A stretch of DNA of 64,000 nucleotides from Octopus bimaculoides (taxonomy: Eukaryota), in contig NC_068992.1 in NCBI RefSeq assembly GCF_001194135.2, positions 56,891,912-56,955,911 on the forward strand, given 5' to 3'. Below the pieces are notes generated by a model. It saw only the letters and a program-made list of their open reading frames with translations. It did no database searches and was not told the origin of the DNA. Shown here piece after piece: positions 16,532 through 57,296 of this stretch; position 1 is the first letter of the stretch; the number at the start of each line of letters is the position of its first letter. A program made the translations under genes and the position numbers.

Positions 16532-16676
16532 GGCTTCAATGAAGTTGAAAAACATCTTCGTGATAATGGAATATGTATAGCCCGAACAGAGAAGCTTCTC
16601 AAGGACTCTGGTGTGGCTGGGACTGAAGCATATGATAAAATTGTTGACAATCTCAAATTGAAATCAAATGCACGGG
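16532..16676 (+). CDS. mtt: Internal exon A of a metabotropic glutamate receptor-like class C GPCR (Mangetout/mXR-like), Venus flytrap domain
   Basis: Polypyrimidine tract and AG acceptor at 16530-31, GTAAGT donor at 16677. The 145 nt encode GFNEVEKHLRDNGICIARTEKLLKDSGVAGTEAYDKIVDNLKLKSNAR+G. The ICIA motif is mGluR-typical and KDSGVA matches Drosophila Mtt as I recall it. Too short for the ORF track. Confidence 0.92.
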
Positions 16677-17404
16677 GTAAGTCGAATTTTTAGCTAGGGC
16701 ATTGTACAATATATAAACGCGTGTGTGTGTGTTGAATCAGTATTAGACAATCTGGCAATCCTTTTACATGGAATTTCGTCTGCCTTTCGGAACCAAGGCC
16801 CTGAAGAGATTGTATACATAGATATGAATTGTTTATAAATGAAATAATGTTAGTCGAAACAAATTGTTGGCTTTATTTGTTTGTTTTTAAATTGGTTATA
16901 TTATATTATATTTTACAGCATATTATATGATATTATATTATATTATATTATAATGTAATAAATTGTTAGATTGTCAATTGTATTTCTCTATTTAGTTTAT
17001 TGTTTGTAATTTGTATTTATACTCCTATTTATGTGGCATTCAACTGCCGTACCAGTGAATTGGATGTTTTACACCCCTTTGAAGGAATCATTTTACCTTC
17101 GTTTGTTATACTATATTATATTATATTATATTATATTATATTATATTATATTATATTATATTATATANNNNNNNNNNNNNNNNNNNNNNNNNNNNNNNNN
17201 NNNNNNNNNNNNNNNNNNNNNNNNNNNNNNNNNNNNNNNNNNNNNNNNNNNNNNNNNNNNNNNNNNNNNNNNNNNNNNNNNNNNNNNNNNNNNNNNNNNN
17301 NNNNNNNNNNNNNNNNNNNNNNNNNNNNNNNNNNNNNNNNNNNNNNNNNNNNNNNTATATATATATACAGAAAGTGAGTGAGAGAGACTTACAAAGATAG
17401 AAGT

Positions 17405-17590
17405 CATTATTACACCATCCATAGAGGAAAGCTTATGCGAATACTCGTTGCGTATGGAATAACTGATGCCATAGTTCCTGCTATAAATATACTCTACATA
17501 ATATGGATGCTCAGTTTCTCTCTCCTGATGGTGATACTGACGCTTCTGATATCCAATCTGGTGTTCTTTAGGATTGCGCATTGACATCAT
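17405..17590 (+). mobile_element. RTE-clade LINE reverse transcriptase fragment
   Basis: TIHRGKLMRILVAYGITDAIVPAINILY / DAQFLSPDGDTD..SGVL*, matching RTE RT domains 3-4. Confidence 0.85.
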
Positions 17591-17887
17591 ATATTTTCAT
17601 AATCACTCTGATGTATTCATGTTGGAAGCCATTGTTATCGAACAAAATCTCCGTTTTACGTCGACACAAAGGAGGCGGTAGCGAAACCTATCACCTGTCA
17701 AGTGTGGTACAGATTTTGATGAAAATACAAATCTTTTAGCTACTATTGAGAGAAACAACTCACGGAAGACCTGCTCCTCAAAAATTCCTCGATTAACTCT
17801 CAGACGATACAAACGGGAGCAAGAAGGACTTGTCAAGGGCAATGGGAAATCGCGAATTGTGGAGAGACTGTCAGAAATGTGCAGCCG

Positions 17888-18152
17888 TATCTTTTACTCG
17901 TTTCAGTTATTAGACTGCAGTCATGCTGGCGAACTGCCTAGAGTCACTTTTAGCTGAATGAATCGGCCCAAGTACTTATAGTTTTTTAAAGCCTGCTACT
18001 TATTCTATCGGCAATTTGGCCGAACCGCTAAGTTACTGGGATGTAAACACACGAGTATCTATCGACAAGAGGTAGGGTGGGATAAACTGAGACACAAAGA
18101 GTCACACACACACACACACACAGACACACACACAAACACACACACACACACA
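17888..18152 (-). mobile_element. SINE family 3 3' half running into (CA)n and a gap
   Basis: TTTTACTCGTTTCAGT..GCCGAACCGCTAAGTTAC. Confidence 0.82.
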
Positions 18153-19397
18153 NNNNNNNNNNCAAGTATGTGTGAGCTCATATCAACATGTGATGATAGC
18201 CGATACATTTAAGCAGAAATATTATGAATTGATAACTGGATTTCAAAAACACCCGTATCACCATCGTGAGATAGAAATTGAGCTTACATGACTGAATCTA
18301 TCACAATATAAAATATAAGAAAGATAAATAAAATTGGAAGATCGAAATATTAGAAAAAAGGTTGTCTATTTTTTTCTTTTTTCAACAATTTCATATAATT
18401 TTCTTTTGAAAACAGCTTAGCTGATGTTATGAAAGTAATGTGAAGATGTTTCATTTCCACCAAACCGCTCGAAACATAGCAGCTGTTGATTGAGAGATAA
18501 GTAGAGTGTTTATTAGAGAAGACCTCTATGAGAACAATACAGCTAAATACATTTTGATTAGTGTGTAGAGGTTTCTAGTAAAGGAATGTTATGTGAATTA
18601 GTCTAATAATTACAACATTTTCGTTTTGTACAGGCTTTTCTTTTATGTTTGAATTGTTTAATTTGACTGTTATACAACTGAATCGAAATTATCAATTTAT
18701 CTGTAAAGATCAAGTCTGACTATGTAATGGGTAATTACTTTGTGATACAATCATGTTATTTAGTTTGCTGTATGTAACAATTTTCTTTGCTAAAGACTAA
18801 TTGTTTGTCAAGTCTTTTTGCTAAAATTCACCTGCGAACAGCAATCAAAATAAATAGTCAAAATAAACAAGCAGTACACAAATCTATAATGTAGGTATTT
18901 TTTTCTCGTTTCACTAATGTCTAAAATCAACTCTCGAGTGTCTGTAATTGAAGTCATTTCCAAAGGTATTTACGGAATAGAAATTCAGTCAAAAAGAAAA
19001 AAAAAATCCCATTTCAGTGAAAGTCTAATCTTCACCTTCTGCAGTTAGACACTTTTCTGCAGTTCACAGCAGTACATAACGTACTTCACATAAACGCATA
19101 ACAGTACCGGTACAATACTCGACTTTTAATCTACGTAAATAAGGTAAATAATTTTTTAAACGTGCTTTTCGCACATTATTCAAGATAAAATATTTGTCAG
19201 ATATACTCATTATTTCCGTAGAGAAATATATATATATATATACATATATATACATATATATACATACAAGGCTCAATGTGTGAATTGTCGTCTTTCATAT
19301 TTCTTATTTTGCGCAAGAGAATTGCTTGTTTTCGATTTTGTCGACTACACAGTATAGAAGGGTCTGTTGGGCACCGTCTGTGAGGAAAAACAACACC

Positions 19398-54900: not shown

Positions 54901-55129
54901 AAGCGTCTTTTTTACTAAAAAGAAGACAGAAATTTGAAGAAGGGTAGAATAGGTGAATAGGTGAATATCATATGAGGCCAAAATAAAAACCACACCCTCA
55001 ACAGATCTATTTCGTAGCATATTAGTTTCTGCATGTTATCCTGGAACACTGACCTTTTCTAACGTCAAAACCTTTAACATGGAGAAAATTGGTATTTTCC
55101 GGTATGAGAAATATATACATTCATATATA

Positions 55130-55840
55130 CAAGGGGGTACTCAAAATGAAGCGGAATTTTGCAATATTATTCTCTTCACTTAGATTTACGTGTTTACAAT
55201 TTTTATCATCTTCAGAGTATTCTCCGTTTAAAGCAATGCATCGGTCTAGACTCGCTTTCCACTTTTCGAAGCAGTCCATGAACTCTTGCGAAATGATGCC
55301 TGTTAACGCCTCCGTGGTCTTTTTTTCTTCACCTCTTCCACATCTGCAAAACCTTTTCATTAGAGGTAACAAGATAAGTCGGAAGGAGCATGATCAAGTG
55401 AATAGGGAGAGTGGATAAGTGAGGTCGAAGGCGCTTTGTCGACATGAAACCACCACCCTCCACTTTGCCAGAGGTTATAGTGTTTTCGTCTCACCGCGTC
55501 TTTCAAACGCTTTAGAATTTCCAAGTAAAATGTCTGGTTGACAGTTTGACCAGGAGGGGCAAATTCTGTGTACACCATTCCTTTCGCATCGATGAAACAA
55601 ATCAGCAGCGTCTCAACATTGAACTTCATTTCACGCGCGTTTTGGGGGCCGTGGTGACATTGAATGTTTCCATTGACATGAATGCTTCTTCGTTTCTGGG
55701 TCGTTGTCACAGCAACAGCTGTTATTCGAAATGAGGAGTTAAAGGAAGCTGAAAGAAGCTCGTCGTGATCACCGTTTGTTATCTCCCCCTTTCTTAGCTC
55801 TCCTGAAATAAGAATTTCTAACTTCCGGTCAGCCATTGTT
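55130..55840 (-). mobile_element. mariner transposon (irritans-like), internally deleted
   Basis: TA|CAAGGGGGTACTCAAAATGAAGCGG terminus. Peptides DPETKKHSCQWK, LICFIDAKGMVYTEFAPPGQTVNQTFYLEILKRL, PYSLDHAPSD and CFEKWKASLDRCIALNGEY. Second TIR not found. Confidence 0.9.
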
Positions 55841-55923
55841 ATGATCGGCCATTATTATGATTGACCGTTGACTGAACACTATTCAATTTTTTTTCTCCGT
55901 GTTTTTTCTCCTTGTCTCCGTAT

Positions 55924-55960
55924 TCTTTCTGTTGAAGAGCGTAGCTCGAAACGTCAAAGA
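55924..55960 (+). ncRNA. Candidate minimal type I hammerhead ribozyme (Penelope/retrozyme-type)
   Basis: UCUUU-CUGUUGA-A-GAGC(GUA)GCUC-GAAA-C-GUC-AAAGA. Stem I is 5 bp, stem II is 4 bp, stem III is the loopless ACGU palindrome. The core deviates at A6 (U). Confidence 0.55.
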
Positions 55961-57011
55961 CTTTCCGTATTCCCGAGCGTCATACTAATATATACTTTTG
56001 TTATTTACACCACCTGTCCTCGTCTGTTGTTATTTTTTGTATATTCTCCCATATATATATATATATATATATATANNNNNNNNNNNNNNNNNNNNNNNNN
56101 NNNNNNNNNNNNNNNNNNNNNNNNNNNNNNNNNNNNNNNNNNNNNNNNNNNNNNNNNNNNNNNNNNNNNNNNNNNNNNNNNNNNNNNNNNNNNNNNNNNN
56201 NNNNNNNNNNNNNNNNNNNNNNNNNNNNNNNNNNNNNNNNNNNNNNNNNNNNNNNNNNNNNNNNNNNNNNNNNNNNNNNNNNNNNNNNNNNNNNNNNNNN
56301 NNNNNNNNNNNNNNNNNNNNNNNNNNNNNNNNNNNNNNNNNNNNNNNNNNNNNNNNNNNNNNNNNNNNNNNNNNNNNNNNNNNNNNNNNNNNNNNNNNNN
56401 NNNNNNNNNNNNNNNNNNNNNNNNNNNNNNNNNNNNNNNNNNNNNNNNNNNNNNNNNNNNNNNNNNNNNNNNNNNNNNNNNNNNNNNNNNNNNNNNNNNN
56501 NNNNNNNNNNNNNNNNNNNNNNNNNNNNNNNNNNNNNNNNNNNNNNNNNNNNNNNNNNNNNNNNNNNNNNNNNNNNNNATATATACATATTCATACACAC
56601 ACATATATTTCTATACAGAGAGGAAGAGATCGACAGACATGATATTTGTCTAATGAAGGCGGAAGGAGTCAATCAATATATACTATGCTGCAATATTTAT
56701 TGTTGAAGCTGTATATTTCCATTATGACTCGGTTTCCATATTCTGAGGTTTCCTAACGATCAGTGTCACATGAAACTCGAGTAAAAACAATTACACTGCC
56801 TAAGTAAGTTACGCACACACTCATGAACCCACATACTCACGTACACATACACACGCTCACGCACTGTTACACACACACGCACACTCTCTCTCTCTCTCTC
56901 TCTCTCACACACACACACGGGTGCGTGGTCTCTAATAATGTGTTTGTTGAATTAACGCGAAATTTCCGACATACGTGTATTTCTATATTTATTTTCTATT
57001 TCACTGATTAG

Positions 57012-57296
57012 GTGGAGGGAGCCATCACTGTTCAGCCGCTGGCATATGATGTGAAAGGTTTTAAAAAATATTTCCTGTCTCTTTCACCGAAGACAAATAC
57101 ACGGAATCCTTGGTTTATTGAATATTGGGAACAACATTTCCAGTGTAAATATCCTAACAGCAGTTGGACACCATTTAATGAAATGTATAACGAAACATGT
57201 ACTGGAAACGAAGTGATTGATCCTGATGACTTCCATCTTGAAGCCCAGCTACAATTTGTCAGCGACGCTGCAATGGCCTTTGGATACGCTTTCAAG
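57012..57296 (+). CDS. mtt: Internal exon C of the Mangetout/mXR-like receptor
   Basis: AG at 57010-11, GTAAAT donor at 57297, 285 nt, phase 0. Encodes VEGAITVQP...TNTRNPWFIEYWEQHFQC...EAQLQFVSDAAMAFGYAFK, containing the mGluR RNPWF.E.W and FV.DA motifs. Confidence 0.95.

Follow-up and report, generated by a model that had tools for sequence, protein, structure and literature searches.

Three exons of a probable class IV metabotropic glutamate receptor gene, with glutamine at the K409 position, in a 64-kb stretch of DNA

We analyzed a 64-kb stretch of DNA (the window, by which we mean the whole stretch) for a gene coding for a G-protein-coupled receptor of class C. The results suggest that the window carries three consecutive internal exons of such a gene, that the gene belongs to class IV of the metabotropic glutamate receptors (mGluRs), the clade of mangetout, DmXR and the 'mX receptor', and that the exons code for about 191 amino acids (aa) of the Venus-flytrap ligand-binding domain. 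Judging from sequence comparison, we put the probability of this reading at about 0.88. The position at which glutamate-binding mGluRs have a lysine, K409 of mGluR1, is occupied by glutamine in the predicted peptide.

The three exons, called A, B and C here, lie on the plus strand (Table 1), and all six splice sites have the canonical AG/GT. Each exon is preceded by a polypyrimidine tract and AG and followed by GTAAGT or GTAAAT; the borders are ttttttag/GGC and GGG/gtaagt for exon A, ttttcag/GT and CAA/gtaaat for exon B, and ctgattag/GTG and AAG/gtaaat for exon C. The junction of exons A and B divides a Gly codon (G/GT), and that of exons B and C falls between codons. Together the exons make 573 nucleotides (nt) with compatible phases, which translate without a stop into 191 aa. 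The first-pass annotation of this DNA had proposed three exons that splice to 191 aa, and the same peptide was obtained when we joined them, with all four of its motifs in place. The translation of exon A aligned to the class IV receptor of Lottia gigantea at GFSEVDKLLKEAGVCLAAAEILMKDSGVA..., and that of exon B was 74% identical to a homolog in locus L001 (ENA ERZ25069870, contig ctg2693_31x_l). For exon C, protein identity was 81% to P0012 and 70% to L001.

We also asked whether coding sequence might be missing between the exons. The exon span contains ten runs of N, all of them intronic and none inside an exon; they include 50010-50225, 51689-52120 and the two of intron 2 (Table 1), four runs that a program-made list of six gaps lacks, and the run closest to an exon, 53711-53897, starts 64 nt past the donor of exon B. 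The joined peptide aligned to mGluR4 and mGluR7 (HMMER) with no gap at residues 48/49 and 96/97, which are the two junctions. In P0025 and P0026, which come from another animal, exons A and B are found in a single open frame (...NARGVIVFGSDQEV; ...TNARGVIVFGSDQEV...), and therefore no exon is missing between A and B. In L001, the homologs of exons B and C lie at 9256-9399 and 10007-10294, about 600 nt apart, with identical boundaries. Taken together, the HMMER alignment, the frame of P0025 and P0026 and the boundaries in L001 indicate that no coding sequence is likely to be hidden between exons A, B and C. Homolog searches found no additional coding match to the class IV family in intron 1.

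A Pfam search with the 191 aa detected a single domain, ANF_receptor (PF01094, E 3.3e-14), which is the ligand-binding fold of class C and ANP receptors; the NCD3G and 7tm_3 domains were not found in the window. When solved structures in the PDB were searched with HMMER, mGluR4 and mGluR7 ranked at the top with E values of about 5e-35 (4.7e-35 for mGluR4), followed by mGluR6, 8, 1, 3, 5 and 2, and the calcium-sensing receptor came far lower (1e-11). Because the PDB holds no class IV structure, this ranking gives the nearest solved relative only. The peptide is a fragment of an mGluR-family ligand-binding domain, in keeping with the mGluR-like receptor of the first-pass annotation. In large protein collections, the best matches were 53-60% identical along the whole peptide. 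Two of them are JGI entries named 'metabotropic X receptor', one with E 2e-67, and the best named matches reached 58% identity; this E value and that for mGluR4 put the similarity well outside what chance would give. Labelled members of these clusters are known from fireflies, a hoverfly, bees ('metabotropic glutamate receptor B'), a moth, a scorpion, a crayfish, the gastropods Batillaria and Elysia, the bivalve Potamilus and the flatworm Macrostomum; the nearest labelled relatives are gastropods and a bivalve, and no cephalopod-labelled protein was among the matches of the two protein searches. The closest unlabelled sequence, L002 (run ERR3431203), matched exon C only (81% at the aa level, 73% at the nt level) and showed no intron similarity.

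Labelled references came from Ramos-Vicente et al. 2018 (PMC6307864, Figure 6-source data 3), who published them as an alignment. The window peptide was 63.5% identical to the class IV receptor of Lottia (mGluRClassIV_Lgi) and 56.0% identical to mangetout (mGluRclassIV_Dme). Identity was 42% to mGluR4-8_Sko, 37-38% (BLAST) to the mGluR4 and mGluR7 of the PDB, 31% to Lottia mGluR2-3 and 30% to Lottia mGluR1-5. A neighbour-joining tree was made from 82 sequences and 190 columns with 200 bootstraps. In this tree the window peptide stood beside the Lottia class IV receptor (60%), with Elysia the next to join (52%); the protostome clade that holds the window peptide, mangetout and the flatworm proteins had a support of 71%, and an enclosing clade of 41 members, none with Lys at the K409 column, had 70%. 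Nothing in the tree points to class I, II or III for the predicted peptide. The grouping with mangetout/DmXR rather than with groups I-III, as proposed in the first-pass annotation, thus stands on both identity (56-63.5% vs 30-42%) and tree position. At the level of sequence, these comparisons show the putative receptor to be an ortholog of the Lottia class IV receptor and of Drosophila mangetout.

In mGluR1, D318 binds the alpha-amino group, and the Lys at K409 binds the distal carboxylate of glutamate. The codons at both positions, and at that of R323, are given in Table 1; the number R323 is presumed from our own count along mGluR1, which agrees with the spacing from D to K in P0164, a vertebrate group I protein. 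That spacing is 91 residues in P0164 (D318 to K409) and 94 in the window peptide. HMMER aligned leaQlqfvsda of the peptide to qegKvqfvida of mGluR4 and mGluR7. Around the K409 position, Lys and Arg are absent from the whole 46-residue segment that runs from NSSWTP to GYAF, and also from KYP (residue 143) to the final FK, and therefore no shift of the alignment could supply a Lys or Arg at K409. The alignments thus agree with the earlier proposal that Asp is kept at D318 and that Gln stands at K409, and they place no Lys there.

The same glutamine is a regular feature of the relatives of the peptide. Among 71 full-coverage relatives aligned with MAFFT, all those with at least 50% identity had Gln at the K409 column; 25 relatives fall in this range, and QLQFVSDA was present in all but two of them (one QLEFVSNA, one QLQFVADA). 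This signature was found in insects, a scorpion, a crayfish, gastropods, a bivalve and a flatworm. The relatives that bear Lys (EGKVQFVIDA, DSKMGFVINA, ESKVQFVVDA) were 32-40% identical to the window peptide; among the 81 proteins compared, 34 had Lys at this column, and none of these belongs to the clade of the window peptide. The Lys at K409 has also been lost outside class IV, with Leu in the hemichordate class III receptor mGluR4-8_Sko and in its database counterpart P0088, and proteins of intermediate identity (37-44%) had Y, N, D, S, E, L or R at this column. This position alone is therefore insufficient as a class IV marker.

The 191 aa correspond to about residues 238-425 of mGluR1, and the exons for the Y74, R78, S165, T188 and Y236 positions are outside the window. 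The full-length relatives with Gln at K409 all have GG[IV]QALE[AT]M, with Ala in place of R78 and Gly in place of Y74, and the Lys-bearing proteins retain Arg at R78. Class IV relatives in which the relevant exons are available keep SSVTS (S164/S165), FFSTS (T188) and EES[NS]YG (Y236). By comparison with its full-length relatives, the window gene very probably has Ala at R78 too. Searches of the 64-kb window for further exons, by tblastn with 33 homolog fragments, by tblastx with L001 and by tblastn with the N- and C-terminal parts of the Lottia class IV receptor, gave nothing significant. A match at 11114-11149 (E = 5) was considered as a further exon and was dismissed as chance; a stop lies just upstream, and the similarity goes no further.

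These data, together with the known properties of the family and class C structures, allow a model of the receptor. The full protein would consist of the flytrap, a cysteine-rich domain and a seven-transmembrane (7TM) region and would act as a dimer. An alpha-amino-acid-like ligand would be held in the conserved proximal pocket by S165, T188, D318 and Y236. With the charges of R78 and K409 both lost, the gamma-carboxylate of glutamate would not be held, and glutamate is predicted not to be an agonist because both of the charges that hold this group would be gone. As in other receptors of class C, closure of the flytrap domain would then drive signalling through G proteins.

It could be argued that the gene codes for a divergent class III receptor, of the mGluR4/6/7/8 type, which lost its Lys independently and lies outside the mangetout/class IV clade. 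The best solved-structure matches, mGluR4 and mGluR7 (E about 5e-35), would fit such an origin, several relatives carry the NCBI name 'metabotropic glutamate receptor 4-like', and mGluR4-8_Sko, which is class III in the eLife set, is also without the Lys. However, the class IV references were 56-64% identical to the peptide compared with 37-42% for class III, and the peptide has class IV-specific stretches that are common to the Lottia class IV receptor and mangetout (QLQFVSDA, KDSGVA, F[GA]SDQEV, VEGAITVQP and NPWFIEYWE.HF.CKYP.S.WTP). The peptide also takes a position inside class IV in the tree, and, as no class IV structure is in the PDB, class III is the nearest solved relative. We therefore give a class III origin very little credence. 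A different objection concerns the ligand, in that a class IV receptor with Gln at K409 might still respond to glutamate (or aspartate) with an altered affinity. Gln can donate a hydrogen bond, the Arg equivalent to R323 is retained, and DmXR is the sole class IV member that has been assayed. But in full-length class IV relatives the changes of R78 to Ala and K409 to Gln always occur together, DmXR was reported to be glutamate-insensitive, and Ramos-Vicente et al. predict on structural grounds that no class IV receptor binds glutamate (PMC6307864). On balance, a glutamate response seems unlikely.

The three exons could also be a relic, a pseudogene or a partial duplicate, outside any working receptor gene, as no other exon of the gene was found in the 64 kb and the introns are very long and filled with repeats and transposon debris. 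Against this, there are no stops or frameshifts, the six splice sites are canonical and the functional residues are conserved. We compared exons B and C with the distant relatives L001 and L002 and found a synonymous divergence (pS) of 0.83-0.93, which is saturated, and a nonsynonymous divergence (pN) of 0.13-0.21, so that pN/pS was 0.13-0.23 (0.15 for exon B, 0.13-0.23 for exon C); nonsynonymous divergence was thus 4-8 times below synonymous divergence. Such values are characteristic of purifying selection that has acted on exons B and C over a long time, and a recent loss of function would be compatible with the same data. In L001, moreover, the exon boundaries are the same and the coding sequence for NCD3G and 7tm_3 follows about 3 kb further downstream, and introns as long as those of the window gene could easily place the neighbouring exons beyond the window. 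We consider it highly improbable that the exons are a relic. Several points nevertheless weigh against the class IV receptor as we describe it. Such a receptor has about 850-1470 aa, of which the window codes for 191, and the exons for R78, S165, T188 and Y236, for the cysteine-rich domain and for the 7TM region are absent from it. Gln can still hydrogen-bond a carboxylate, and the lost response to glutamate is presumed from DmXR. The bootstrap values are moderate (60-71%), which is what one would expect from a distance method applied to a short fragment of 190 columns. Finally, the order of the scaffold pieces across the ten N gaps is taken from the assembly alone.

The introns of the gene are much expanded compared with those in L001. 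The intron between the homologs of exons B and C is about 600 nt there and 3.4 kb in the window, and the homolog of exon C in L001 is followed, about 3 kb downstream, by an open frame of 390 aa (13423-14595) with NCD3G and 7tm_3. Most of the N runs in the window are flanked by microsatellites (TA, CA, TTATA, ATAC and similar), and therefore the gaps probably stand for simple repeats that could not be bridged with short reads. Long ATGT/TGTA arrays were seen as well. Intron 2 contains an open reading frame (163 codons) that matches a partial DDE domain of the mariner type (Transposase_1, PF01359, E 1.5e-9) and is a transposon remnant, and Tc1/mariner-like peptide fragments (…YSPDLAPSDYHLF…) occur at two other places, with no Pfam match. 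A dispersed repeat of about 200-220 nt, SINE-like (short interspersed element-like) in appearance, has at least eight copies with 70-88% identity, which lie in one orientation or the other, and there is a second repeat family of about 300-380 nt. A transfer RNA scan and an Rfam scan of the 64-kb window, including the 200-220 nt repeat, were empty. The composition of the window is 35% G+C, with very long introns and dense microsatellites and short dispersed repeats; the G+C content, the long introns and the repeat density are compatible with a cephalopod genome, without being evidence for one.

Table 1. Coordinates of the exons, introns, motifs, ligand-pocket codons and repeats in the 64-kb window
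Feature	Position	Strand	Description
Exon A	16532..16676	+	145 nt, end phase 1; codes GFNEVEKHLRDNGICIARTEKLLKDSGVAGTEAYDKIVDNLKLKSNAR and the first base of a Gly codon
Intron 1	16677..53504	+	36.8 kb; eight N gaps, microsatellites, dispersed short repeats
Exon B	53505..53647	+	143 nt, phase 1 in, phase 0 out; codes (G)VIIFASDQEVGELMLAVARRNATGMFSWIGSDGWGGRAVVYENKERQ
Intron 2	53648..57011	+	3.4 kb; two N gaps (53711-53897, 56076-56578), minus-strand mariner-type transposase remnant
Exon C	57012..57296	+	285 nt, phase 0 in and out; codes VEGAITVQPLAYDVKGFKKYF...NPWFIEYWEQHFQCKYPNSSWTPFNEMYNETCTGNEVIDPDDFHLEAQLQFVSDAAMAFGYAFK
KDSGVA motif	16601-16618	+	
IFASDQEV motif	53513-53536	+	
WIGSDGW motif	53588-53608	+	
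EAQLQFVSDA motif	57240-57269	+	
GAT (Asp), mGluR1 D318 position	53600..53602	+	GSDGW aligned column by column to GSDSW/GSDGW of mGluR4, mGluR7 and mGluR1-type proteins
AGA (Arg), mGluR1 R323 position	53615..53617	+	GSDGWGGR; aligned pair GSDGWADR/GSDGWGGR; retained
CAG (Gln), mGluR1 K409 position	57246..57248	+	first Gln of EAQLQFV; HMMER and MAFFT columns concur
Microsatellites beside N runs, examples	17106-17166, 18103-18152, 27981-28058, 29005-29117, 43228-43331, 53898-53992, 58650-58695		
ATGT/TGTA arrays	7131-7350, 7590-7790		
Open reading frame, transposon remnant	55363-55851	-	163 codons
Tc1/mariner-like fragment	11299-11610	-	
Tc1/mariner-like fragment	19677-19892	+	
Repeat of about 200-220 nt, copies	3128-3345, 10066-10289, 13141-13361, 23166-23382, 23398-23617, 25177-25411, 32744-32999, 62977-63211		both orientations
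Second repeat family, about 300-380 nt	12758-13128, 34153-34455, 44225-44600		

The literature places the putative gene in a class that is already known. Ramos-Vicente et al. 2018 (eLife, PMC6307864) named mGluR class IV and found members in each of the bilaterian phyla that they studied, with the exception of vertebrates, and they reported that R78 and K409 are replaced in every class IV member; the Gln of the window peptide is a non-conservative replacement of Lys409. The species of their set, among them the mollusc Lottia gigantea and the annelid Capitella teleta, include no cephalopod. Publications of 2009 and 2011 still described mangetout/DmXR as insect-specific, and the first-pass annotation noted that it was first described so and treated such a receptor as unknown in cephalopods; the premise of novelty is outdated, given the class IV receptors across bilaterians, Lottia included (PMC6307864), and the QLQFVSDA signature in our non-insect database matches. 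That study (PMC6307864) predicts just such a gene in a mollusc, one of class IV in which K409 is Gln, and the window gene, as reconstructed from its three exons, would be an expected member of the class. In the literature that we searched, no description of a cephalopod class IV mGluR or mXR receptor was found, and a 2026 preprint on the glutamatergic system mentions neither class IV nor cephalopods; the specific member may thus be undescribed so far.

What the natural ligand of class IV might be can be approached from the distribution of the pocket. Glutamate reportedly gave no activation of DmXR, and L-canavanine activated it in HEK cells with an EC50 of about 0.5 mM. The role of DmXR in canavanine taste is disputed, in that GR8a, GR66a and GR98b were shown to detect canavanine. 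We rejected canavanine as a likely ligand of the window receptor, as the DmXR evidence is at the millimolar level and contested and the same pocket is kept by animals with no exposure to legumes. The same pocket signature is found in marine gastropods, a bivalve, flatworms, a scorpion and a crayfish, which makes a legume toxin unlikely as the ancestral ligand; such a toxin is implausible as the ligand to which the marine relatives, or the animal of the window if it is marine, would respond in nature. The distribution speaks rather for an amino-acid-type compound that is conserved and endogenous, or widespread in the environment, and that would be common to protostomes. Going further, class IV, with its near-invariant Ala78 and its Gln409 in QLQFVSDA from flatworms to molluscs and arthropods, might comprise receptors for one conserved amino-acid-type transmitter or metabolite, and a member from a large-brained mollusc, possibly a cephalopod, might serve as a deorphanising handle or have been recruited as a peripheral chemoreceptor; we regard this as a speculative idea with long odds against it.

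By itself, the window adds one more incomplete class IV member, about a fifth of the protein, and is of little import alone. The Drosophila member is the only one assayed with respect to the ligand question of class IV, with disputed results, and a clean full-length lophotrochozoan ortholog would be useful for deorphanisation. Among known receptors, the one most like the window gene is Lottia gigantea mGluRClassIV_Lgi (LotgiG133010), its sister in the tree, which matches it over all 191 aa with a length difference of one residue. Both have Gln at K409 within an identical LEAQLQFVSD, and GSDGWG.R, VEGAITVQPLA and the long NPWFIEYWE stretch are common to the two. In IF[G/A]SDQEV the window peptide has Ala, whereas most of class IV has Gly. 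The Lottia receptor has Ala at R78 (GGIQALETM), whereas the window gene is known here from 191 aa that do not include this position. The founding member of the class, Drosophila mangetout (mtt)/DmXR (Mitri et al. 2004, 2009), is in the same clade and has Gln at K409 (QLQFVSDA), Asp at D318 and the KDSGVA motif; DmXR is known from cell assays, whereas the window gene is known from its sequence. The class III receptors human mGluR4 and mGluR7 (PDB 8wg9, 2e4z) share the fold and the domain with the window peptide, align with it collinearly and conserve the Asp at D318, but they differ from it in their lower identity, in having Lys at K409 (EGKVQFVIDA) and Arg at R78, and in binding glutamate.

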